This document shows, in pieces, positions 5,936-62,935 of a stretch of DNA of 64,000 nucleotides (the first letter of the stretch is position 1; each line of letters starts with the position of its first letter). The translations under genes were made by a program, and so were the position numbers. The notes beneath the pieces are model-generated. The model saw only the letters and a list, made by a program, of their open reading frames with translations, made no database searches and had not been told where the DNA came from. The stretch is from Bispira polyomma (Eukaryota): NCBI GenBank assembly GCA_965649765.1, contig OZ287751.1, positions 8,866,001 to 8,930,000 of the forward strand. The letters run 5' to 3'.

Positions 5936-6589
5936 GAAAGGAAATGAGTAGTGCTAGGGACACATACAATGCCTTTCTCTGAAGCTGATGTACAACCTTC
6001 CTACTGATACTAGCAAACAAACTGTCTCTAAAAATAAGCAGTTTAAAGCAAGAGAGAGGGAGAAACAAAGAACTGAAAGGAATGCTGTCAGTTTCATGTT
6101 GACAGCTGACTTCATGACTTCAGCAGTCTGTCAAATCAAGTTTCATTGTAAATTTTAACATCCATTGTTTGGTATTTGTATCCATGCTGAATCCTGGCAG
6201 TGTTTCAGTAAAACCACAAAAGTACTTGTTTTTGAAAAGAGTTCCCATATAGAAAAGATTGAATATTAGTGTGTATTAATTGTTGCGGTATTTAATGTTT
6301 GACATGTATGATTATCATTTGGATTTGCGATGTACTTAATAAAAATACATTTATCGTAAAATATGTACAAAGTTAATGTTGTACAGCCAATAACTCCATT
6401 GCGCTGAAAACATGATGCATGACCATACCAAAGTACATGTACCAAAATATTTTGACAGCTGAAGTTGAAACATATAAAAATAATATTTTTGCTGCAGTGA
6501 ATGTGAGTGTTTTCTCTTTTTCATACAGACCTGCACACTTGTTTATGTCTACAGATGTTTTATTTTATAGTTTACTTTCTCATACATAT

Positions 6590-7163
6590 ATGTGAGGATG
6601 TTCATTTCTGTGTTGGCTGTGTCATAAAGATGTGAACAGATTTTCATTTTTGTGTTTGCTCTATCATACAGATGTGAACAGATTTTCATTTCTGTGTTTG
6701 TTCTGTCATACAGATGTGGACAGATGTTTATTTTAGTGTTTGATGTGTCATACAAATGTGAACAGATGTTCATTTCTGTGGTTGGTCTGTCATACAGATG
6801 TGAACAGATGTTCATTTCTGTAGTTGGTCTGTCATACAGATGTGAACAGATGTTCATTTCTGTGTTTGCTCTGTCATACAGATGTGAACAGATGTTAATT
6901 TCTGTGTTTGATGTGTCATAAAGATGTGAACAGATGTCTATTTTAGTGTTTGATGTGTCATACAAATGTGAACAGATGTTTATTTTAGTGTTTGCTTTGT
7001 CATACAGATGTGAACATATGTTTATTTCTGTGTTTGCTCTGTCATACAAATATGAACAGATGTTTATTTTAGTGTTTGATGTGTCATACAAATGTGAACA
7101 GATGTTTATTTTAGTGTTTGCTCTGTCATACAGATGTGAACAGATGTTCATTTCTGTGTTTGC
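6590..7163. repeat. 42-bp minisatellite, ~13.5 copies
   Basis: Unit ttcatttctgtgtttgctctgtcatacagatgtgaacagatg. It explains the repetitive 14-aa-period ORFs on both strands (6549-7307 -, 6652-6921 +, 6934-7254 +). Confidence 0.95.
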
Positions 7164-8972
7164 ATTTGAGAAGAAAGGATGGAACCACTGCTTACCATTT
7201 ATTATAAATAATGTTAAAATTATAAATGTCCTCAAAATTATTGTACAAAAATAAATATGTACAACTATGAACAACAAATAAGTCACGCGAGGGCAAGTTG
7301 ATGTCATTTATTTGGTCAGGTCATATAACAGAGAAAATCGAAAACTTAACATGTTTTATTTACGGTTCTATCCAAAACACACAATCAACGAGGTTGTAAG
7401 TAGTATGTATATAATATATTTTAACTTTTTAACAGTTATACTCAATTATATTAAGCTGTAATAAAGAAGAATTGATGTAGAGTAATTAAGATTATACAAT
7501 TACATTTTGCAAAAAAAAAAAAAAAAATTAAATGCAGCAGCAACAAAGTGAATGATTGAGGTATTAGATTATTCTGGTTATTTTGCAGTATTCTGTTTTA
7601 CCTGCAATTATCGAAGTCAACGGCTAGACAATTTCACAGCTTTAACAAAACTCCTTATCAATCAACAATGCAACTCATTTTTGTCCAATTAGTTGCTGCA
7701 GTACCCAAACCTGATTGTGCGTTTTTTTGTCACGCAAAGGTCAGGTCATGTAGGCTATTAGAAGTAGACAGAGCTTACCTTTCAACCAAAACCTAACACA
7801 AACTTAAATCATACAGGTATTTCATATTTTATATTTGGAGTCAAAAATATTATCTTCATCCCTAAAAGTAGTATAACCTGTATAACAAAACTAAGATATA
7901 CAATGAAAATCTGCAGTTTGTCTTTTATTTTGAATTAGAGACACTGAAAATAATACTAAAGCTCACCACTTCTAACTTATGGTGATTTGTACTTTAGGTC
8001 AGTGTAATTATAGTTCAGGTGGAATGTCCTTAATGACCCCCCGGATGAGTAGAAGTGTGCAGCTTCATCTTTACTGCATGTGTCACGCCCTAGGGAGAAA
8101 TGGGCACTAGTAATGTGCACCTATAGGAGATTAATGATGCCAGGCAGCAATTCATTTGTATCATATTTTATGAAGTCAAGAAGGCTATTTGTTTTTTACA
8201 AATCTGTAGCCAACAGAAATCAGATAAAGGAAATTAGCAAGTAATTTCATTCTAGATTATTTTTTTTCTTATGTCTGTAAGCAACAGTTTGATATTTGAT
8301 GTACATAAGGTAATACAAAATTTGCAACACCGCAAATAATTCCATTTTTATATTAAAATTTGTAATTAGGGTTTGGACCATTAAGCTACAGTTTATTTTT
8401 TAGACATTGGGTTCGTATTAATACATTCTATGGTGACAGGAAAAAAACAGGCAAGAAAACTCATGTTGCAAAATTCATGTTGCAAAGAGAAAATGCATGT
8501 TGGAAAATGACCTAATCACTATTGATGCTAATATATTGATGAAGCTACAGAAAAAGTGACATAAAGCTACAAATCCCTAAAATAAGTAAAACTACCAATT
8601 CACGGTTGATTTTAGTACAATATTCTACTACATTTAGCAAAGCAAAGCTAAATCTTTATCAGTGGTAACTGTTAATAATGCACATGTTGAGTTACCTATG
8701 AACCTTTTCTGTTAATATCGCCCTAGGCACTACACCATAAAAAAACCTTTCTACAGGTAATTAACCTTGCTTGTTACCATTAATGACTCGGTCAAATGAT
8801 AAACCCTCTGTGTTCTATAATGTGGGATAAACATCCTCTCACTTTCAGAAACAGGACTTACATACAGTCAAACTTGTATGGGAGACCAACTATATTTCAT
8901 CATCTTGTTAGTTGTCGTTCTAAATCAATATATTTTGATCCAATGTAATAAGTTTCTATACATATTCTGATC

Positions 8973-16294: not shown

Positions 16295-16488
16295 ATGGAT
16301 AGGCTCTTCAAATCTATTTTGGATATCAATGAAATCAAGTCCAAGCTTGACGATGATTTCACAGACAGGTTAAGTAGACAGAGGACAGTGATTGTCATGA
16401 TTGTTATCACCTTTGTGCTGGCTGCTAAGCAGTTTGTCGGGGATCCGCTGACCTGCTGGTGTCCTGCCTACTTCACCAAAAGTCACAT
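16295..16488 (+). CDS. inx: Innexin (invertebrate gap-junction/pannexin family), coding exon 1: N-terminus, TM1, start of extracellular loop 1
   Basis: Translates MDRLFKSILDINEIKSKLDDDFTDRLSRQRTVIVMIVITFVLAAKQFVGDPLTCWCPAYFTKSH. It carries the innexin motifs DDxxDRL and KQFVGxPIxCWxP. It ends AT|GTAAGT (donor at 16489, phase 2), matching the phase of exon 2. Family-level symbol only; orthologue not assigned. Confidence 0.95.
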
Positions 16489-48800: not shown

Positions 48801-51639
48801 TATGTGGAGACACGCATCCTTCATTCATAGCCTAATCAAATCACCCACCCATCCCATACATATACACGTAGGCACACACCTATAAATATTCAGACTTACC
48901 ACAAAGGGATTACACCATGGAACCATAGACCCAAGCATACAACCATCCACATATACCCGTCAACCATACACATACTCATATACATACTGATATAAACCCT
49001 AACCGAGAACAAGTCAATCAGCAACTCACCCATTCATAGATATTTAGTCACACACACATTCATTCATTCATACATAAAGGCAAGCATATCATCTGGAGAT
49101 TACTCCATGTTGCAGAGATACAGCAAAACAGCCATCAACACCCAGTCATACACCATAACAAATAGCCACACATCCAGCATACACAACCTAAGCCAGCCAC
49201 CTATTCACCCATACACAGCCATTAAGTTACACACATAAACTCATATACACACATACCACTTTCTCATGCAAGTTAGTGATTTCAGCAGATGAGTGAAGAG
49301 AGAACCTTCCAAATTGGGAAGCAGTTCAGGCCTCTGCTTCAATTATCACTGATTTATTTTAATGGAATTTCCTCTGGAGGAGACAGAAACATGGCAGACT
49401 GAGAGTCTGGGACTATTGGGAAGAAAATGCATGTCCTCTCTCCTTCCTAACTGCACGTTCTGTGGTTCTCATAAAATCTATACCTTAAATTTTCGCTTGA
49501 AGTCAAAGTTAGATGCTCCACAAAAGGCCTTCTGATTGCCAGTTAGGTTGAATGAACTACATGGGAAGAAGGTTTTTTCAGAAAATTTAATTCAGCTAAT
49601 AGTAAGATTAAAGTAGAAAAACCTAAAGCTTTATCCATGTGTAAAAATATGAGAAGATCAAAAAAGCAACCCTAAGCTATGTTGGATGGAATCTATCACA
49701 CCAAAAAAGACACTTTTTTGACATTGCAAAGTGTTTCCTGTAGTGAAGCAAGTGTATGACAAAAAAGTTATTGGATGTCGGTGAATAACTAGTAGAGAAT
49801 CCTCAAGTTTAGGTTACTTTTCAGTTTGCATATTGTTGTGGTTACTTTTCTGGAGATTCAGGAAATATGTGGCTGCCACGGGAATAGAGATTATTGAAAC
49901 AAATCATTTGTGGATATCATTTATTAACTTGGATCTACCAACAAGACTAGTGCACAGCAAAGCCTTGTGATGTCTGATATCCTAAAGGAGATAACACGCA
50001 AAAGAGAAGCTTGAACTCAAATTTGGCATAGCCAATCAACTCCAGAAACCCTCAGTAATTGCAACTCTGGCGATAAAAAAGGGAATGTGCCCTAAAGCTA
50101 AAATCACCTTGTATTGGAAACTGCAATAGCATTTTGAAATAGAATCCAGAAAAAAAGGAACAAAATGTATTTGAAAGCATTTAAAGTAAGTTTATCAGAA
50201 TATGGCTTACACAGCCTCTGCGAGAAAAATCTATGACAATGGGATGTGTGATTACACTAGGGAAACATTCCGTATGCAAAAATTACCCACAGAGCATTTG
50301 TGAAGTGATGGCCCCTCTTGATCAATTTTATGACAAAGGGCCACTGATTACCGGCAAAAGATCCCTCAGAGATCGACCATAACCCAATTACAATGTAAAG
50401 CAGAATTTTGGAAGCTCTGTGCTAAAAATATGGATTTATGTTGTTCAAGGGACTCGGATGCTGAACTTTTAACAGGAGAAAATGTGGGGTTTCTCCTTTT
50501 TATCTTACACAATTTGTATGTCAGGTTTATTATAAACAGTTTGAATATCTAAAAATGTATTGATATTTAATGCTAGAAACAGAACAAAGTCAGATGGTTC
50601 ATGTATAAACTGCTATTCCAATTGCAAATATCAGCCATCTCACCATATTTGCATCTCTGGCTTTGACATAAATACATGTATATATATATAGTATAATCTT
50701 TGAAGAAGCTTAACACTACTACTAGAACAACCAAAACATAGAATGTTCCATGTTGCTATTATACACATTGCCATCCCAATTGCAAATATTAGTAATTCAT
50801 GCAATCTGTTTTAGATATGTCTGTATCCGGGTTGATGTCGAATCCTTTTAAAAGGATTAAAGTCCCAAATCCAATTTTGTTTATTAAGCCATATGTTGTT
50901 GAACATCCCAGGTATAATTCATTTGTACATTTGCCAAACAATATGAACACAATGTGAGTGACACACAAAAGCCTAAGTAAACACACTGGTCAGTGTCCCA
51001 ATATGTTGCAGGAAGCTTTAGCTGAAGCAAAGAAAACTGCACTTGCTAGACTAAACAGAGTTATACAATGTCTAGTGTGGGATAGTTTGGATTATGGTAG
51101 TCTTTTAAACCCACAGATCAAAGAAAGCAACTAGCTATTTCTTACCTCTTTTGTATGTTCTATTATCTTCATAAAAGTCTCAAAAACCAATCCAGTGTTA
51201 TAACTATAACTAGAAAATAATTTGTTCAAAATACATGTGATAGAACATAATCAGTAGTGTAAAATTGACTAAATTATGCATAAATTCGATTTAAAAAAAT
51301 ACTTCAAATCCAAATATTTTCAGGATTTGACCCCACACTGATTTGTAACCCTACAATGTACACAATGTGACCTATATGTGTACATTATAAGCCTGGGTTT
51401 GCCATACTGTGACTGTTCCAAACCATTTGCTGTATAAAGTATACATCTACAGAAACTCAAATACAGATGATATAATCGATATTTCGTTTAGGCTTATATT
51501 TTATTTGTATATGCTGACCAGACATGTGCCCTCCAAATGCTGAATTGGAATATTTCTCCCTCCTGTACTACTGTTCAAATCTGTGTGTCATGCAGAACCC
51601 CTTTTTTATATTTGAACATTATCTGTAAGTTTAGTTTGG

Positions 51640-51713
51640 TTTTCACCTGAACAGCGACTATACAAACCCTCATCTGCTGGGCCTACACCATGTATTATAA
51701 CATTCCAGTGAAG
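51640..51713 (+). pseudogene. Degenerate duplicate of the innexin exon 2 acceptor and first ~55 nt (pseudo-exon fragment)
   Basis: ttttcacctgaacAG|cgactatacaaaccctcatctgctgggcc...tataacattccagtga aligns to the real tttttcctgaacAG|agactatacaaacctgatctgctgggtc...tataacatcccggtga, 153 bp downstream. Confidence 0.88.
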
Positions 51714-51807
51714 CATTCATTTGTACCAGTTTTAGGGTATCATCCAGAAACTCTATTCTATCTAAACATTAAACTGTCATTTTCTTTCTGTTTTTTTTCC
51801 TGAACAG

Positions 51808-52007
51808 AGACTATACAAACCTGATCTGCTGGGTCAGCCCCACGTATAACATCCCGGTGACTGAGCCGGTGCCTCGACCTGACCTCAACCAGAGCAATGG
51901 CAAACACATGGTGGCCTACTACCGCTGGATGCCCATCATGCTGCTTGTCCAAGCCTGCTTCTCCTACATGCCTTGTGTGGTCTGGAGGTTCTTGAACAAA
52001 CGCTCAG
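51808..52007 (+). CDS. inx: Innexin coding exon 2: rest of EL1 and TM2 (not in the ORF track)
   Basis: Acceptor ttttttttcctgaacAG|A. Reads (I)DYTNLICWVSPTYNIPVTEPVPRPDLNQSNGKHMVAYYRWMPIMLLVQACFSYMPCVVWRFLNKRS(G), with YTNxxCW and the YY(Q/R)WxP..L..QA..F..P...W signature. Donor G|GTAGGT at 52008. Length 200 nt; phases 2/1 fit exons 1 and 3. Confidence 0.95.
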
Positions 52008-52821
52008 GTAGGTACTATTTACACTGAAGATGAAGAGGTTTCTAGAGAACCATCATCTGCGGGAGTTTTTCCCACAGGTTTTAAACTCGAAGCCATAATT
52101 TCCTTTATGTATTGTGAGCTTATGGTGAGTTCAAACCTCACCTCACATGCTTAAACTCAAGTACCACATATAAATACATGCCCTTATTACTATAAATGAC
52201 CATTAATGAATGTTTCTTGTACAATCAAACCTGCTCGAGAGACCACCTTTATGTAAAGACCACATTTGTATTTCCCAAGCATAATGTTTAAATCATATTG
52301 AATCTCTTTATAAATACTACCAGTTAATAAAGACCATTTTTGGAGGGTTCCCTTGGGTGGTCTTCACACACAAGGTGTATTGTATTTACAGTTTGAATAG
52401 ACATGTTACTCTGTCTCTGTTATGGTTAAATTGAATAACATGCACAACTAATATGTTACATAAAAGTAATGCAAAAAAAGAAATACTTGCAAATTTCCTT
52501 TGTTTTCCTACTTAATAACTTGTAGTATCACAAATAAACGAATCAAGAGCTTTTTACATGCCTCATCATTATAGTAAAATCACGAAATAATTGCAATAAT
52601 TTATGACATAGTATTACCAATAGATTTAAATGCAGCCACCTGTATTACCAATTTAACATATACCCGAAAGTCAGTACTCAAACTTTAAGTGATACTTGTA
52701 ACTCAGAGACGTTTACCCTATTTCCTATGTATAGATGTCAACGATATCATGACAAGTTGACCCTATTTTCCCCAGGTATAAATGTCAGAAATATCATGAG
52801 AATTTGACCTTATTTTTCCAG
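52008..52821 (+). other. Innexin intron 2 (814 bp, GT-AG)
   Basis: GTAGGT ... tatttttcCAG, phase 1, restores the conserved SG-INI junction. Confidence 0.92.
52222..52382. mobile_element. Tc1/mariner-type MITE in innexin intron 2
   Basis: TA|caatcaaacctg...gaccacc ... ggtggtc...caaggtgtattg|TA, with internal aagacca repeats. Confidence 0.6.
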
Positions 52822-52846
52822 GTATAAATATCACCGATATCATGGA
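52711..52846 (+). repeat. ~46-bp tandem triplication spanning the innexin exon 3 acceptor
   Basis: Three units: gtttaccctatttcctAT|gtatagatgtcaacgatatcatg; gttgaccctattttcccCAG|gtataaatgtcagaaatatcatg; tttgaccttatttttcCAG|gtataaatatcaccgatatcatg. Confidence 0.9.
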
Positions 52847-53687
52847 AGCGACCAGGGCCGGACCAAAAGAAAGCACTGTGATGGTGCGAGAGCCGGGTTT
52901 ACAGTTTATGGCCACCAGAGTGCAGAAGTACTTACTGGCTCAGAGGAGCAACAGGAAGGGCACCTGCGCAAGCGCCATGCACACCATCTCTATGTACTGC
53001 TGTATGATTGGCGGTCGCCAGTACGGGAACTACCTGACCACATGCTTTGTGTTTACAAAAATCCTTTACATCAGCAACGCTCTGGGCCAGCTGTTTATGC
53101 TCGACAGGTTCCTGGGGATTGACTACCACTTCTACGGCATCCACATGGCCATGAAGTTCTTCAAGGGTGAGGAGAACTGGACGGCCACTGACAGGTTTCC
53201 CCGAGTCACCCTCTGTGAGTTTGAGATCAGGCAAATCGGGGAACGTATACACAAGCACGTGGTCCAGTGCGTGCTGGCGATTAACATGTTTAACGAAAAG
53301 ATATTCCTTTTCATCTGGTTCTGGTTTGTGTACATCGCCATTGCAACGCTGATGACAACATTCAAATGGGTGGGCACCTGCATGTATTGGCCGGTTCAGA
53401 CCAGATTTGTCTGGTCTCAGCTGAAAGCCGCCGACAGCGACCTACAGAAGGATTGCATCAAGCTGGATACCTTCACCAAGGAATACCTACGCAGGGACGG
53501 ACTGTTTCTCATCAGGCTGATGAACATGAACCTTGGCGAGAGCATTTCCAGCGAGGTGCTGTACAAGTTATGGATTGGATATAAACCAGACAAGACGTCA
53601 AACTTGTTGGAGAGATCAAACTATAATGCTAACTTGAGAAGACGGTATGACAAGCAAACTTCAACAAAGAAATTTGATGTTGTTTGA
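52822..53687 (+). CDS. inx: Innexin coding exon 3: cytoplasmic loop, TM3, EL2, TM4, C-terminal tail to stop
   Basis: Acceptor tatttttccAG|GT, then GINITDIMEAT in frame with ORF 52842-53687. Contains GNYL..Y/F...K.LY..N...QLF, FPRVTLCEF, QCVLAINMFNEKIFLFIWFW and F...YLRRDGLFLIRL. Spliced CDS = 194+200+866 = 1260 nt = 419 aa plus stop. Confidence 0.97.
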
Positions 53688-55526
53688 GCCTATTATTTTA
53701 CATAATATGATATTCAGTCAATTGTACATGTGTGTATTATTTGTACATGTTTGTGTAAATTAAATGTTTTCACTAGTAAAATCACTAGAGGATTTGTTAT
53801 TACTATAAATGTCCTGTTTCCATCTATATATATATAGTTAGTCTTCTTTTTTTCTAATGTTTATATACTAATTTGATTTAAACATATTTTATTGAACAAT
53901 TTGTGTCCACTAATTTATGTATATCACTTTATAAACTTATCCAGGTTTAATTGTATATCAGTGTTTTCTTGATAGTTGTTGTCAGGTTTGTGATGTATTA
54001 ACTACACAACTTAGATGTGAATTTACTTTATTAACTTTTAAAAAAAAAACTCACTTTTCTCTAAATGCAATTTGTGTATAGGTAAAAGATTATGCGCATT
54101 TGTATGTGATGTTCGCATTGTCCTGTGATAGTAGCACTTAAGTGTCAGCACTATAATGTCATATTATGCACAATGTATTAAGTGTAAATTTTGGATCTCA
54201 TTTTTGATATTTCATGAATATTTTCCATGATGTCTATAGAAGTGTGTATGGTTTATAACTTTGCTCAGAGTTGTATTTCTGTGAGAGTACTGTTGTTGTT
54301 TTTTTTGTTAATGTTGAAAAAAGTTAATTTAGCATCTCGAATGCACATGTTTTCTTTGTTTTGTTTTGGTATGTTATTGATAATAGAAGTATGGTGAAAA
54401 TGGTAACGTTTCTTTCTACTTTAAATGTTATTATCAATTGTAACATGTTGTATAAAGCATTAGTAATGTAGAGGTCTTACTATCTACGCAGGTTTTTAGT
54501 GCAACTTTTTAATCCTTTCAAATCCAAAAGAAAATATCGCCGGGAAGTGAACAAAAAATTTTCGATAACAGCTCACAGATAGATAGAGTCACTAAAACAC
54601 ACACTACAGACTACTTCCGGAATTTAATAATGACCTCACATATAATCTTGCTCTATGAGCAATTTCATATTGCGAGGAACTAGAGGAAAACAAAATTATA
54701 TTTTTTGTGGTGTCCACCCCTTGCGGACAGACGTAGGTTTTAAGAATAACAAGCAGACAACAAAGTGGTCGAAAAGGGTTAATTTTATGTTCAGTTTTAT
54801 ACAATTACTGTACTCTGTAAGAAGACATTCATAAAGAATAACATGACACTATCTGTTTTAGCTATATATCAGTGCACATCCATCACATTTTATACACACT
54901 CCAAGATATTGAATTGGCTTTTTGATTTACAGGTTTTTTGCAATCTGTGGTGCGTATTTTTTGGGTATATTACAATATTAAATTAAGCTGTTTTACATTA
55001 CCCTGAACAGTAGTTCAGTGGTTTGTTTTTTCAAACCTTTGTACCACAACTTAAAGCTGTCTTTGTTTATTGATAACCCCCTTAAAAAAATCAAGCCTCA
55101 TTTTGAAAAGAATACTGATTTCATCTGCAACTGTAATACTGCAAACTCTACCATCTGGATATTGTAATATATATAGTTTTCCTAAGTGACAAGATGTGAT
55201 AATTCCAGGTGCAAAAATCACTAATACTACATAACCTCATTTACTTCATATTTCTTTTCCCTGCAAATATTGTTCTCTGTATAAATATTGATGTTCTATA
55301 ATATTTCTCTTGTTACACAAATCTTTTGTGTCATATAAGGTCACATTCTTGCCTCCCATTGCTGCAGTTGTGCGCCTGAATGTCGACACTGGCAGGCATG
55401 AGAAAAAAGTTGGCAGTAAACTTGCTGAAGGCTGGTGGTCGACAATAACAGAGATCCTTAACAACTAAAACCCCTCCCCCTGGTCTGTTTATTTAGACTG
55501 CCTTTCATGTTATAATGGACACAATG

Positions 55527-55750
55527 GTGGGGGTTGTGGTGGCCTAGTGGTAATAAGGGTCTGTTTTAAAATCACTAGCCTCTCACCTCTGTGGATTGAA
55601 TCCCACAGATTCCTTCTTCATGTGAGAAAGTTAGTTAGCTACTTGCTGTAGGTCGGTGGTTTACAGTGCTTCAGTACTGGTTTCCCCCACCACTAACGTT
55701 GGCCGTCTCAATATGACCAAAGCTGTTAAAAGCGATTTAAATCCCAAATA
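55527..55750 (+). mobile_element. tRNA-derived SINE, family 1
   Basis: A-box TGGCCTAGTGG, B-box-like GATTGAATCCC, body atgtgagaaagtt...taggtcggtggttt...ggtttcccccacca. Homologous to 38612-38795. Confidence 0.75.
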
Positions 55751-56066
55751 TATTTAAATTACAATAAATTTAAGAATAGGATTACACCAAATCTGTCTAT
55801 AATCGTACTTTTTTACTTATTTTCCAGATTTGTCATTAAATTATTTACAAAAATGCTACCACTAACGGGTAATGTATGAGTTTTATTCTAGTCCGCCTTG
55901 AGTAAAAGTTTGTACAGACTGACAGAATTGTTTGTACTGTAGGACAGTTATATAGATCCCGTCTAAAATAATTAAAAAACAAGTTTGCATATAATTTTCT
56001 CAATGTTACCACTAATGTGCCAACTACGATTTACATAGCTTTTGTGTATGTTTTAATTTATGCTAC

Positions 56067-56072
56067 AATAAA
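56067..56072 (+). terminator. Candidate innexin polyadenylation signal (AATAAA)
   Basis: Lies near the end of a T-rich stretch extending from the stop codon and is followed by GT-rich sequence. An alternative AATAAA lies at ~55763. Confidence 0.4.
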
Positions 56073-56222
56073 ATTGTGTATGATGGCTAGAAAATCTAAA
56101 AGTGTGTTGCTTGAGTCATTATCTTATTCCCTAAAACCACCTTATCTACTGTGCTTAGTATAAATGTAAATACTTTTATAAGGAAAACTTTCTGCATCTC
56201 TGTATTAAATAGCAATTGATCT

Positions 56223-56460
56223 GGTGGTCCCCCATGGCCTACTGGTTAGGGAGTTGGTCTGATGATCAGAAGGTCCTGGGCTCTATTCTCGATACCGGTC
56301 GCTACTTTCATTGGTGGGATGACACCCTTGGGAAAGATGTGTACAGACATGGCTCCGATTACCATGGCTTTTACCACTTAAAATGGCGGTCCTCTGTCAC
56401 TGGGTCCTATCCTCCCAGTGGTAGGCTAAAGATCCTTGGGGACGTTGATGTATGGTCATC
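56223..56460 (+). mobile_element. tRNA-derived SINE, family 2, between the two convergent 3' ends
   Basis: Head tggcctactggttagggagttggtctg...cagaaggtcctggg. Body ccacttaaaatggcggtcctctgtca is shared exactly with ~28480-28505. Confidence 0.72.
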
Positions 56461-57171
56461 CTCAAGCTTCGCTCTTTAGTTAGAGGAATTACAGAAACTA
56501 ATGCAGTTGATTGGTGCAGTCAGGAAAGGGTTAATTATCGCTTCGAATACCAGATGAAGGTAGATATATGCGCTGAGTATAAATGTGATTACAATTACAA
56601 TCTAGAGATGATCCAGAGATGCACTGTATTGAGTGTCTTTATAGTTTCAACATGTTTTGAAACAATTTTGATATAGATTTCTTTATTGACTTCAGGCTGA
56701 TGCAAAAAGTATTATATCATCACTACAGGTTATAAGTTATACATCATGAATTATTTCCGCTAAAAAAATTTCACCAGCCTATTTCTTTTTAAATTATTAT
56801 TGCGACATAATAAACCTGGCTAATTTCAATTAAAACTAGTTTTTACATACAAATAAATTATTACTAGGCTTTGTTTTAAAAACTTCTCTCACATATCCAA
56901 TTATTAAATTTCAGTACTTTCTCTATCCAATACAATGTGTTACCATAGTATGTTTTGTCATCAGAATAATATATCAGGATAAAGTTCCTGGGATCTAGTC
57001 TGCTTTGGCAATAGATTTTACAAAAACCCATCTTTATCTGTGTAGACTTTTTCAGTGCAATGCATTTCTTACACAAGAGAATCTTGAGAGAATATATTAC
57101 AAGTGTTTACCACAAATAAAAAATTGAGGAAAACACAACACACAATACACAAAAATATGGCAGAAATATAA

Positions 57172-57177
57172 TTTATT
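57172..57177 (-). terminator. Candidate polyadenylation signal of the CUB-LDLa-TM gene
   Basis: TTTATT on +, followed on - by GT-rich sequence (tttttgtgtattgtgtgttgtgtttt). An alternative lies at 56682-56687. Confidence 0.4.
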
Positions 57178-57773
57178 CACAAAATATTAACAAAAGGCTT
57201 TGAGGAATACAAACTATCACAGAGAAAAAGATCTGATTTGGCCAGCAAGTCAGCTTACTCAAGACAATTAGTCATATATATACAATGGTCAAATGCATAC
57301 AAACATATTTTGCCATTTGTTTCTACAAAATAAACATTTAATCTGAATATCAGTAAATTAACCAGTTTAGAAGCATGATGCTGAAGATATGTAAACGCTA
57401 TTTGTAAATCACAAAAAAGTATATGAATGAGTATTTTTGAAATTGATTATTTCTCGACCCATCAATAGAATTGCTTTTCCAAAGCCAAAATTATTTACAA
57501 AATGTACTCACTGTTAATATTTTATATTTTTATTCCAATAATATAAACTACAAAATGTAACAGTGTATTTTGCTGGTATATTTATTTAATTCTGACACAA
57601 CATTTGTTTTTTCCATTGAAATGTAAAGTGTCTTATAAAATATCTGATATAGCCGATTGCTAATTAGCAAGAAATTTTAAACCTTTCTAATGGACTAAAT
57701 AAAGGTTAAAATTTGTAAACACCAAAAAATATTATATACACAAATATCATAAAACTCCATAAAAATGGTATAA

Positions 57774-58047
57774 GGGCTGATATTCACAACGATTCTTAGG
57801 CTGGGCTTCCTTCAAAATAGGACAGTCCTCTATTTTTGCTCTCTGACAGATAAAATATGTTGGCCCAACAGACGTCTACCGACGTCTGATCCGATCTGTT
57901 GCAAATATGATAAAAGGAAGCACTTGGTAGTATTGTGTAATGAGCCAAAAAAATCGGCAGAGATAAACATGCTGAAAGGAAGAATCTCTTTGGCTGAAAC
58001 TAAAATAATTCTCAGAATTGCATCCTAAGAATGTTTGTAAGTACGGC
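57774..58047. mobile_element. Degenerate Harbinger-like MITE in the putative 3' UTR of the minus-strand gene
   Basis: Imperfect TIRs gggctgatattcacaacgattcttagg / cctaagaatgtttgtaagtacggc. Confidence 0.5.
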
Positions 58048-58570
58048 GGCTACAAATCGAGTCTGAGAAACTTAGTATCTCCCACTCATTGATGGGGAAT
58101 GACAGAGTCTATCTGAGGCATTAAAGACAATTATAAAGACCGAAAGTGCGCATAGAACACAAAACCCATCAGTGCGCAAATAATAGCCATACTTTATCTG
58201 GGAGAATAAAGTATGAATAAATAGTTCCGTCAGGAAGTATAAAAATAGTTCACAGTAAGTTGGAAAATATCTTGTTATTTGCTTTAAAATAAACTATTGT
58301 CAGTCTTTATAATAGAAATAAAGTCCTCGAGTACTTTATTTGGGATTAGAGGACGGCCTTCCGGCATAATGGCATTATTTCGCCGGTAAAACCGTTGTTT
58401 AAACTCCAATAAAGTACGCACTCACAGACTTTACTTCTACAATAGTTCCACTATCACAGAATTTACTTTTAACAAACAAAGAACATTGATAAATCCTTAA
58501 AAGTTTCCCAACATTGCATTTCATGTCCTTCAAACACCACCTTTCTTCACCACTTCTTCTGAGGCATCTT

Positions 58571-58721
58571 CTACTTCTCATCCAGATACCTGGTCAGCTC
58601 GTCAGCCTTTATTGTCTGTTTGTAGTATGTCTTCTCTTGGCTGAAGTACTCGGACACCTGTGGATCTCTTCGTCCTTTCTTACCAATCTCATGGATTTGG
58701 TACTTGTCTGTCTTTGGATAG
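58571..58721 (-). CDS. CUB-LDLa-TM protein: probable last coding exon (cytoplasmic tail)
   Basis: Acceptor ttgcttttAG|C completes the phase-2 codon (AGC). Reads YPKTDKYQIHEIGKKGRRDPQVSEYFSQEKTYYKQTIKADELTRYLDEK* with coding-like composition; 151 nt. Confidence 0.75.
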
Positions 58722-59538
58722 CTAAAAGCAATTTGAAACTGTGCCGATGTAATGGCATGTATAAATACATGGTTACCGAAAAGAGTAGACACAGCCCCTA
58801 AGGGGTGTGACAAAATTTGAATGTATTTGTATTTGTATACATAATTGGTAGGCTGAAACATAATGTATAGGTAATGTTGGTTCCTAATTTTCAGAGGCAT
58901 TTAAAAAATGGTCTTTCCATTGTAGTTGTCATGGTTACAAAAAAGGCTGAAAGGACATTAAATAAAACAAAGTTTATAACTGTGTAAACCTAAGTTACAA
59001 AAATTAATTACTAATATATTTCACTGCAACTCATTTAAACTAATTATCAGTCAGTTAGCTCTAGTTAGGGGAATGGTCATTACTCGTTGGCTTATGAACC
59101 TTAAAAATTTTGTTTGAACTAAAACAAGCTCAACAAGAACAGTGGAGACATTTATTCCAAGAACCTCACGCATATTTATTCAGAGCATGCCTCAAATGAT
59201 GGCAGGTATTGTGCAAGGTAGATGCGGTTGTACCAAATACAGAACAGATTTACAGATGCTTAGGGATGGCCATTTATCAATGTCCCGAAAGTTCATGCCA
59301 CTGGAGATGGGCCACTGGGGATGGGTCCCACTGATAGAGGACCGCCATCCAAGGGCTCAAACCCAGGTTATCTGTGTTCCTAAGCGAGTGTGTTACTCTC
59401 TAGGCCACAGGGACATATGGAGTATAATTCATTTTAGATAAGTTTGAATGCAATACAATACAAATAAAGTATGGCTTTTTACCAAGCGAATTGTCAGTTC
59501 TGCTCTACACTCTGACCATACCCTATTTGTATACTAAC

Positions 59539-59731
59539 CTGTAGAGATCCCCATCATGTATGTCCAGACTGGAGCTGGTCTGGTTCCTCTGCAGCCAGTA
59601 CTTCCAGTAGTAGTAGGTGTAGACTCTCCAGATGACAATGGCCAGGATGATTAGCAGGATGAGTCCGGCCACAGAACAGCCAATGATCAGATCCAGGGGA
59701 AGCCCGCCTGTAGAGTCTTCATTGTCTGCCT
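59539..59731 (-). CDS. CUB-LDLa-TM protein: transmembrane exon
   Basis: EADNEDSTGGLPLDLIIGCSVAGLILLIILAIVIWRVYTYYYWKYWLQRNQTSSSLDIHDGDLY contains a single ~23-aa hydrophobic helix. Acceptor ctttaaCAG (phase 1), donor AG|GTTAGT (phase 2). Confidence 0.88.
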
Positions 59732-60004
59732 CTGTTAAAGTATGGCAGAACCTCAATTATCCAAACCTGTCTTATCCGAATATTCAATTTGATGAACACA
59801 TTTGCACTCTGATAGAATTATGTTTTCCTATGTTGCTATGCTAAAATGCATCTTCTATTTATGGACCTTCCATTATTTGAACAAAAAATTGCTCTCCCAA
59901 TTGGGCATTCACACAAATGTCACTCCATACCCCCAAAATTACATAGACTTTCTATTCATTAGATAATCTTGTTTTAATTTTATCCTTATCACCACTTTTT
60001 AAAC

Positions 60005-60146
60005 CACTTTCTAGAGTTTTTCTGCATAGCTGCCCCTATATTATGGAATAGCCTCCCAACTGAACATAGATCACTAGAAACAATTCTCAGATTTAGGAGA
60101 AAAGTTAAAACATATCTCTTCAAACTCACCTACACCTACACCTACA
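60005..60146 (+). mobile_element. L2/CR1-clade LINE ORF2 3' remnant with short-repeat tail
   Basis: Translates AAPILWNSLPTEHRSLETILRFRRKVKTYLFKLTY, followed by (CACCTA)3. Confidence 0.78.
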
Positions 60147-60154
60147 ATTTGAAT

Positions 60155-60340
60155 TTGGATATTTAACGTCCACTCTAGTACCTTTTAGTAGGTTATATTG
60201 GGACGGGTAGTTGGAAACGCTGGAGGAAACACTGCATACAGTCGGTCAAGGTTCTGCACTGAAACCAGCGGCTCACAGTAAGGAACTACCACCTTTCCCA
60301 CATAGGCATCGACGGGATTCAAACTCTCAGAGGTGAGAAT
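60155..60340 (-). mobile_element. SINE related to family 1 (5'-truncated)
   Basis: Minus strand reads ctcacctctgagagtttgaatccc...atgtgggaaagg...gtttcctccagc...aatataacc...gttaaatatccaaat. Confidence 0.55.
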
Positions 60341-62040
60341 TAAGTACCACAAAGTCTGACAGATAGATTATATGAGGGTATCTATGTTGTCATATAATAG
60401 CACACACAGTCACACACACACACACACACAGGTGTGTGATACATGAGGACATATATGTTATAAAGTATGAGGACATCTACATTGAGACATGCATGACAAC
60501 ATATACTGTCCCTGGGCTAGTGGTTAGGGAGTTGGTCTGGTGCTCAGCAAGTTCCCAGTTCGACTTATGGCAATACCATCATGGTAATTAGGAGATAACA
60601 TACTTTAGCAAAGAACCTGGAAAGGTGTGATCCTGTCCTTGTCTACTAATGACGGCCAGTTGCCAGTTGGCTATGTATTAGGATTATGATCGACAGTCTA
60701 TCAATTATATTGTCACGCTTTAGAAGATGCCCTCCTCAACAAGGTGCTTTGAAGATTCCCAATACAACATACTGACTGTTGTATTGTTTCAAATATATAC
60801 TCTGTTTATTTGTCTACCCTATATTTGTTCTTTGCCATTCAAATCACTAATTAGCCTTTCCTGAGCTGCTCAAATACAGCCAACCATGGTAGTAAGTGAC
60901 ATAATCCAAAATAAAGAGAAAGGCTAGGACAACCACTTTCAACGTCCACAAAGATCTTCAGCCTGTCACTGGAGATAGAACCCAATGACTGAGGTCTGTC
61001 ATTTTATGTGGTCATCCGGGCCACTATTTTTCTAATATTAATTTTTTTGTACTAGGTACATCAAAGTGTACAAACAAAAAGTTAAACTACTACTTACAAA
61101 ACATATAAGTAAAGAATTTACAAAAAGAGGGTAAAAAGGAGTAAAACAAAGTTTTACATATATATTACGGTTACTGCTTCTTTCTAACAAATTCAGTGCA
61201 CAGGGATTTTGACTATGATCCAACTTCCACAACAAATGCATTAAGTATTTTAAATATCTGACAATCAACAGGCAGGCAAGTTATTATCTAACAAAGGTAT
61301 GGATTTTGAGTGAGTCTGGTATGGCACTCTTGATGACTTTCTGAGATATATACGTCATGTAATGTATAAAAATATACAGTTTCACTGCTACCAAGATCCC
61401 AAAACGATCTACCTGCCTTACCTGGTTAACCCGACCTAAGATCAAAGTACTGTGTAAGTGATTGTTACTCACTGAGATACAGTGATAGATGTATGAGTGC
61501 ATGTGAGTCATGCATTAGGACATTTATGTTTCATGTATGGGCACCCACATAAAGTCATATATGAGGATATATATATTTAATGCATGAGCACACACATAAA
61601 TTCATATATGAGGACATATGTGTTTTTTGATATGTGACTGCAGAAACATAACCCTTACTTTGTAGATAAAGTATACTTAGAAGTCAAGTAAACCAATATG
61701 CTGACTAAGATAATAAAATATTTTATTTTAGCAAAGATTGTGAGTAGGAAAAATGGAAATTTATTAAAAACATTACAACAGATATTTAGAAATGCATTTT
61801 CCATTAAAATTAACTTTAAAAACTAGATTGAACCTTTAAAAGACTATGGTTGAATCCAAGTGAAATTTAAGTAAGCCGAGTTTTAAGAGTAACAAATTTC
61901 TTGTTAAGTGAAAAAAATCACACACCAAAGTAAGTGAGAAAAGAATAACTTGTTCGAAAATCACACCCCTGGCCTAAATAAGACGCTCTAGCTATCATCA
62001 ATACAATCTAGCTATCCTCAATACAATCTAGTATACTGAC

Positions 62041-62157
62041 CATCACAAGTGGCTTCATCAGACCCATCCCCACATTGGTTCTCGTCATCACACTGTAGGG
62101 AGGCATCTATACACAGCTCCCCATGACTGCAGGTAAACTCGTCCGAAGAACAAGGGG
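62041..62157 (-). CDS. CUB-LDLa-TM protein: LDL-receptor class A repeat exon
   Basis: [38 protein letters not shown] has six Cys and the acidic C.DGSDE motif. Acceptor tttgtttCAG, donor G|GTCAGT. A 117-nt phase 1-1 exon. Confidence 0.93.
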
Positions 62158-62413
62158 CTGAAACAAATATCGCAGAATATTTTTGGCTATTCAATTTTGG
62201 CTCATCATAAAACATTTTTACATATTTATTTGTTCAGAAAAATCAAACAATCATAGAAATAGGCCACAACATCTATACCAGGTCATGTTCAAACATCTTG
62301 CCTAGTAAGGCTGGCTTTCTAGTGATGTGGGTAACGTGTCTCCCTCTGTGTAAAAACAAACCAGCTAAACTATCTGGACCATTTCAAACACCTCCAGTTG
62401 GATTTGTACTTAC

Positions 62414-62636
62414 GTGGTGAGTATGCCACATAGACCACCTCAAACCCTCTATATACTGCACTGCTGTCTGAGTAGAAGTGGAAAGTGATCTGGTTCCCAG
62501 AAGATGTGATGTTGAACTCTCCATGGATGGTACCGCAGGTCTCAGCAAACAGCACCGGAGAGTTTGTGTTTGGACCATCGTGTAAAGTCAGAGCATCCAC
62601 ACATACGCCATCTACAGGCGCCTCTATGGAAAACCT
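62414..62636 (-). CDS. CUB-LDLa-TM protein: exon encoding the C-terminal part of a CUB domain
   Basis: RFSIEAPVDGVCVDALTLHDGPNTNSPVLFAETCGTIHGEFNITSSGNQITFHFYSDSSAVYRGFEVVYVAYSP matches the CUB consensus (C.D.L..DG, CG, SSGN..F.SD....GF...Y). Acceptor ctctactttCAG; donor C|GTAAGT, phase 1. The exact acceptor used is ambiguous because of tandem copies (see findings). Confidence 0.9.
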
Positions 62637-62935
62637 CTGAAAGTAGAGTTCAAACATTACACAACAGACACCATCTACATGTGCTTCTATGGAAAACTTC
62701 TGAAAGTAGAGATCAAACGTTACAGAACAAACTCCATTTACAGGTGCCTCTATGGAAAACTTCTGAAAGTTGAGTTCAAACGTAGTGAACAGACACTATG
62801 TACAGGTGCCACAATGGAAAACCTCTGAAAGAAGAGGTCAAACGTACATAACAGTGGCTATCTACAGACGCCTCTATGGAAAACCTCTGAAAGCAGAGTT
62901 CAAACGTAGTGAACAGACACTACATACAGGCGTTT
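62601..62935 (-). repeat. 62-63-bp tandem array (5 copies plus a partial) spanning the CUB exon acceptor
   Basis: Unit on +: ccatctacaggcgcctctatggaaaacctctgaaagtagagttcaaac.... On - each unit contains tttCAG|A(G/A)GTTTTCCAT; candidate exon starts are 62636, 62699, 62762, 62824 and 62886. Confidence 0.93.

Follow-up and report, generated by a model that had tools for sequence, protein, structure and literature searches.

Why should an intron carry, close to an exon, further copies of that exon's own edge? The question is raised by a window of 64,000 nucleotides (nt) from Bispira polyomma (GenBank assembly GCA_965649765.1, contig OZ287751.1, positions 8,866,001 to 8,930,000 of the forward strand), by which we mean the whole stretch analysed here. 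The genome it comes from comprises 1.035 Gb in 75 contigs. Two genes of the window, an innexin gene on the plus strand and a CUB-LDLa-transmembrane gene on the minus strand, have tandem copies of splice acceptors upstream of the authentic ones. We call such copies echoes. They belong to a wider phenomenon: independent local tandem duplications across splice junctions, at both exon ends, occur here with a 4-7-fold excess over ordinary non-coding positions. The echoes are real and genome-wide in this animal.

Echo arrays in the window

Three of the six coding acceptors of the window are preceded by tandem copies, as against none of its five donors (Table 1). The three echoed acceptors had been claimed in the original prediction, made from the sequence of the window alone, and they are borne out: seven copies could be located, and CAG is kept in six of them, as had also been claimed. 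Innexin exon 2 has a single echo at -153, with CAG kept and 1 nt inserted; its use would lead to a frameshift and an early stop. In front of innexin exon 3, the echo at -46 (start 52776) keeps CAG and would likewise cause a frameshift and a stop, while the echo at -93 (start 52729) has its AG changed to AT, the only loss among the seven. The CUB exon (first base 62636) is preceded by four echoes, at distances of 63, 126, 188 and 250 nt, all of them with CAG. The two nearest (starts 62699 and 62762) are in frame and open and would, if used, add 21 or 42 amino acids (aa) inside the domain; the other two (starts 62824 and 62886) would shift the frame.

Each unit matches only its own exon edge, and the units are mutually unrelated, in agreement with the prediction that no single mobile element is involved. 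With no shared sequence family among them, an origin from a mobile element or a family of the Introner kind is rejected. It had further been stressed that the intact exon is always the most downstream copy. This is true, but it is forced by the geometry of tandem duplication across an acceptor and has no value as evidence.

The innexin stretch is unbroken in one contig and shows 0 differences across three public runs, which come from one study and maybe from the source individual. Coverage over the introns is even in these runs and behaves like that of DNA, and within this possibly single individual no length variant is seen at the innexin echoes. Identity between the CUB copies and the real junction is no higher than 82-92%, a divergence that an assembly error would not be expected to leave.

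Frequency of echoes elsewhere in the genome

Independent test exons were chosen by Pfam rank outside the window, from CCT chaperonins, myosins, aldehyde dehydrogenases (ALDH) and innexins. Their junctions, 78 acceptors and 64 donors, were set by hand from reading frame and splice consensus. A junction-spanning copy lying 12-230 nt into the intron was counted as an echo; the flanks of the 142 junctions mostly measured 260-280 nt, and echoes farther off were missed. Protein-kinase matches, mostly long intronless frames, served for the background only.

Echoes are present at 22 of the 142 junctions (15%; 10-21% by bootstrap over loci) and at 21 of 70 loci, including housekeeping genes such as those for CCT subunits. 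Copies directed into the exon were found at 0 of the 142 junctions. Donors (13/64) are at least as affected as acceptors (9/78), and the two do not differ (Fisher p=0.17). The acceptor specificity of the original prediction is therefore rejected, and "acceptor echo" is too narrow a name, because donors share the property.

Applied alike to junctions and to non-coding positions 400 nt or more away from known exons, one seed-based algorithm finds copies at 13.4% of the former and at 1.9-3.4% of the latter (p=4e-7 against the 3.4% background). The junction rate thus lies above the rate of ordinary tandem duplication. A count of array ends gives 22 within the first 75 nt of exons, where 3.1 are expected, which is a 7-fold excess. 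Junction units are also longer than others, about 25-170 nt with a median of 75 nt, compared with a background median of 34 nt (p=2e-5). The exonic part of an echo covers 9-75 nt (median 36). The intron parts of the units match as well (z>5 in 13 of 18 cases, all three window arrays included), and the echoes are therefore head-to-tail duplications. Some arrays of the test set have grown to 10-17 copies.

Reading frame, decay and age

From their sequence, the echoes look non-coding and decaying. Unit lengths modulo 3 are distributed as 8/9/5 among the 22 test-set echoes, that is, randomly, and an open in-frame insertion would be possible for only four of them. In the direction from real exon to echo, G>A and C>T make up most of the differences, and decay is fastest at CpG positions, as expected for sequence released from constraint. 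Codon positions and splice-site retention were scored on the independent test-set junctions, the latter with the splice site masked from detection. Mismatches amount to 9%, 7% and 21% at codon positions 1, 2 and 3.

For the age of the echoes, a related species (ENA ERZ22147071) is informative. Its innexin exons are 83-89% identical to those of the window, whereas its CUB exon lies outside the compared DNA. Both innexin introns occupy the same positions there, and it lacks the two innexin echoes. Apart from exons, no more than a few short patches can be aligned between the two species. At two synonymous sites the exon 2 echo agrees with the related species and the functional exon has diverged; at three it agrees with its own exon against the related species. 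The echo is thus a snapshot of the junction made after the species split.

Echoes occur at 0 of 16 junctions of the related species (Fisher p=0.13 against this genome) and at 0 of 6 junctions of a sea cucumber; these numbers are suggestive of lineage specificity and too small to establish it. The innexins of the other animals examined are intronless and supply no control junctions. Two ALDH paralogues that are 82% identical (L074:273-484 and L075) both have acceptor echoes; an insertion seems to have pushed those of L074 to a distance of about 1050-1100 nt upstream. Echoes can thus be old, and the count given above is a lower bound.

Comparison with known systems

The closest known structures come from single human genes. 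In F7 IVS7 (37 bp), CBS IVS13, IFI6/6-16, LMNB2 (100 bp) and PDGF (81 bp), the first unit of a minisatellite spans an exon-intron boundary, and the pseudo-sites of F7, LMNB2 and PDGF are silent (PMC1557585). Like the echoes, these minisatellites have a tandem unit bearing the junction, pseudo-sites in the intron and the real site next to the exon. The same structure is found here, with head-to-tail units made of intron and exon sequence and the authentic site, as judged from ortholog and frame, on the exon-proximal copy. The F7 type is, however, restricted to a handful of single genes, to donors and to nearly identical copies, whereas echoes affect about 15% of junctions, donors as well as acceptors, frequently consist of one or two copies that have diverged, and exceed background 4-7-fold.

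Primate segmental duplications, too, contain tandem repeats that lie at exon-intron boundaries and are capable of altering splicing (De Grassi and Ciccarelli 2009, PMC2812944). That set consists of 27 intron modifications in recent paralogues, with new introns, while the echoes are found in single-copy housekeeping genes. Among the echoed genes here, no new intron was seen.

The Rogers model of intron gain (PMC3265369, PMC4974935) resembles our case in that tandem duplication of a short intragenic stretch copies splice signals. In that model the duplicated sequence is an exonic AGGT and a new intron results, whereas with echoes it is a junction already present, and the old intron becomes longer. 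Intron gain of this type is rejected, as both innexin introns are in place in the relative. Internal gene duplication, treated by Gao and Lynch in 2009 (cited in PMC4974935), is likewise said to copy splice signals. In tandem duplication of whole exons, which gives rise to mutually exclusive splicing, exon sequence is copied into the adjacent intron just as in echoes. Echoes differ in that they comprise one edge only, are without the partner site and in most cases disrupt the frame. With exonic parts this short, random frame and so few open insertions, they are not duplicated mutually exclusive exons.

The kind of object is thus known from single human genes. No description was found of its occurrence on this scale, of its symmetry for donors and acceptors or of its excess over background, and no report of genome-wide enrichment of junction echoes was met in a limited search of the open-access literature.

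A possible model of echo formation

We propose, with a probability of roughly 0.58, that duplication is biased to exon edges and that its products are tolerated owing to exon definition. Its starting point is a result: local head-to-tail tandem duplications straddle splice junctions, having arisen independently at each one, and some were later amplified into minisatellites. We suppose that duplication is truly more frequent at exons or inside them, because slower decay of arrays with one constrained copy explains, by our reasoning, at most about 2-fold. Duplications lying entirely in an exon would be purged, and those crossing its edge would survive. In introns longer than about 250 nt the mammalian spliceosome favours those sites that have the shortest distance across the exon (PMC9225289); exon definition in the long introns of this animal might pick the authentic site in the same way, so that echoes are tolerated. 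Products of occasional leakage would be cleared by nonsense-mediated mRNA decay (NMD). From then on the extra copies would be non-coding and decaying, each recording the state of its junction when it was copied; they would not be a regulatory device. The bias itself could be caused by slippage or break repair at the GC step, by exon chromatin or methylation, or by breaks linked to transcription or splicing.

A bolder version, which we hold only tentatively and with clearly less confidence, goes further. In this lineage the mutational process would be coupled to exon definition itself, with breaks linked to splicing, transcription or exon chromatin being repaired by local duplication at exon edges throughout the genome, and about a quarter to a third of exons would be echoed.

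Several points weigh against biased duplication at exon edges. The mutational bias is deduced from the excess, and the exon-definition step from mammalian data. The sample consists of 142 junctions from four gene families. Plain GC content is rejected as the cause because the background arrays are not GC-rich but AT-rich (GC 0.30). Finally, there are traces that resemble selection. AG or GT is kept in 21 of the 22 nearest copies, where 0.82 is expected (p=0.08), and in 67 of 73 copies when all are counted (p=0.017, the copies being non-independent); moreover, the echo site is as strong as the real one or stronger in 13 of 22 cases. The original prediction had asked whether AG retention exceeds neutral expectation. 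The direction is that of an excess, but the excess is marginal and short of significance, and we regard it as a hint and not as a result.

Alternative explanations

The most serious alternative is survivorship. Duplication would be uniform along the DNA, and arrays anchored in an exon would decay or be deleted more slowly, since one of their copies is constrained and the flanks of exons tolerate fewer indels. In accordance with this, a mild enrichment is also seen for arrays that come near a junction without crossing it: within 250 nt there are 18 such arrays where about 10 are expected, and within 50 nt there are 8 where 2 are expected. Furthermore, junctions lie within their units at positions that do not depart significantly from a uniform distribution (Kolmogorov-Smirnov p=0.18). 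Constraint on one copy is, however, worth about 2-fold at most, and the junction rate remains in excess of a doubled background (p=0.004) and 7-fold by array ends. Nor is intron DNA near exons visibly long-lived, to judge from the few patches that align in the relative. We therefore consider survivorship as the only factor unlikely. The original idea of a process that preferentially duplicates junctions agrees with the 4-7-fold excess on independent genes; it has to be extended to donors, and the excess could be due to mutation or to survival.

Less likely still is that the echoes are selected as decoy or helper sites, whose extra signals and enhancers would aid recognition of the exon, provide a backup for the real site or channel transcripts into regulated NMD. 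The slight excess of retained AG and GT and the frequent strength of echo sites speak for it, as does the use of the nearest pseudo-donors in human IFI6 and CBS (PMC1557585). On the opposite side, the innexin echoes are lineage-specific, being absent from the relative; echoes occur in housekeeping genes such as CCT subunits; echoed junctions are no weaker than unechoed ones (p=0.8 and 0.96); and retention is not significant on independent copies. The proposal that echoes are kept as alternative or decoy acceptors thus finds little support in lengths random modulo 3, in the 4/22 open insertions, in GC-to-AT decay or in the marginal retention. A regulatory system is probably not what we see. Taken together, the evidence favours duplication hot-spots at exon edges over a splicing device built for a purpose.

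Quite improbable is a role in protein-coding alternative splicing, in which echo sites would produce longer isoforms, for example with the 21 or 42 additional residues in the CUB domain. The two nearest CUB echoes are suitable for this, and differences at third codon positions exceed those at first and second ones. Much of the latter excess is, however, drift of the real exon, because the exon 2 echo of innexin keeps ancestral synonymous states; units of 3n length are not enriched (8/22), only 4/22 are open, and both innexin echoes lead to early stops.

An artefact of assembly or of a locally repeat-rich window can practically be dismissed: although this genome is rich in short tandem repeats (one array per 3.5 kb), the copies have diverged, three runs show the innexin stretch without a break, and the excess recurs on several chromosomes and in four gene families.

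Implications of junction echoes

The interest of the echoes lies chiefly in their enrichment, which still calls for an explanation and is open to direct tests. If equally strong rival sites lie 25-230 nt from about 15% of junctions, the genome holds many thousands of natural tests of spliceosome choice. These bear on scanning versus exon definition and could be answered with one RNA sequencing data set. A further question, prompted by the excess over background, is whether mutational hot-spots lie at exon edges. If the duplicating process is coupled to exon definition, echoes would be a DNA-level footprint of exon recognition, and thousands of them natural experiments in splice-site competition. 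Through echoes, moreover, introns could grow, junctions slide and new micro-exons arise. In practice, they will mislead gene predictors and exon-primed polymerase chain reaction in this animal.

Genes and other repeats of the window

The three coding exons of the window innexin join to one open frame of 419 aa, the best named relatives of which are annelid innexins (42-47% identity). On the minus strand, the window contains the 3' part of the CUB-LDLa-transmembrane gene, whose 5' part lies outside it.

Table 1. Coding exons and echo arrays of the window (positions in the window)
Feature	Position	Strand	Basis and remarks
Innexin coding exon 1 (ATG to GT donor)	16295..16488	+	Pfam PF00876; donor without echo
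Innexin exon 2 acceptor echo	51558..51710	+	about 97 nt of intron tail, CAG (AG 51653-51654), about 56 nt of exon head
Innexin exon 2	51808..52007	+	PF00876; functional AG 51806-51807; ortholog 89% identical
Innexin exon 3 acceptor array	52711..52844	+	46-47-nt unit x 2.9
Innexin exon 3, last coding exon	52822..53687	+	PF00876, homologues; functional AG 52820-52821
Last coding exon (cytoplasmic tail) of CUB-LDLa gene	58571..58721	-	without echo
Transmembrane exon	59539..59731	-	hydrophobic stretch in open reading frame, conserved in relative; without echo
LDL-receptor class A exon	62041..62157	-	PF00057; without echo
CUB-domain exon (second half of CUB domain)	62414..62636	-	PF00431
CUB exon acceptor array	62601..62930	-	62-63-nt unit x 5

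The window innexin belongs to a local cluster with at least one further innexin gene upstream (C4:8728851-8919573). Its first intron measures 35 kb. Intron 2 is about 810 nt long, compared with about 245 nt in the related species, and contains at 52218-52360 a short high-copy interspersed repeat, at which the summed contig depth is about 30x that of the flanks.

Two further innexins deserve mention. At one exon end (L030, on C6) the donor is apparently GC, and the echo 72 nt downstream reads GT. Another innexin (L015:1265-2298) has two Pfam matches overlapping in different frames, a frameshift that indicates either a pseudogene or an assembly error.

Some arrays lie near junctions without including them. 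A 20-nt tandem repeat on the minus strand (61987-62031) begins a few nt past the donor of the LDLa exon and excludes the donor itself, and at several test loci arrays stop 12-50 nt short of a junction. On the plus strand, the array at 6557-7166 consists of 13.5 copies of a 42-nt unit that includes an acceptor-like pyrimidine tract and CAG; it adjoins no coding exon and is possibly the echo of an untranslated one.

Among the kinase matches there are many nearly identical intronless frames of about 411-418 aa, distributed over chromosomes and possibly borne by a mobile element, with a tandem cluster at C4 97.6-99.1 Mb.

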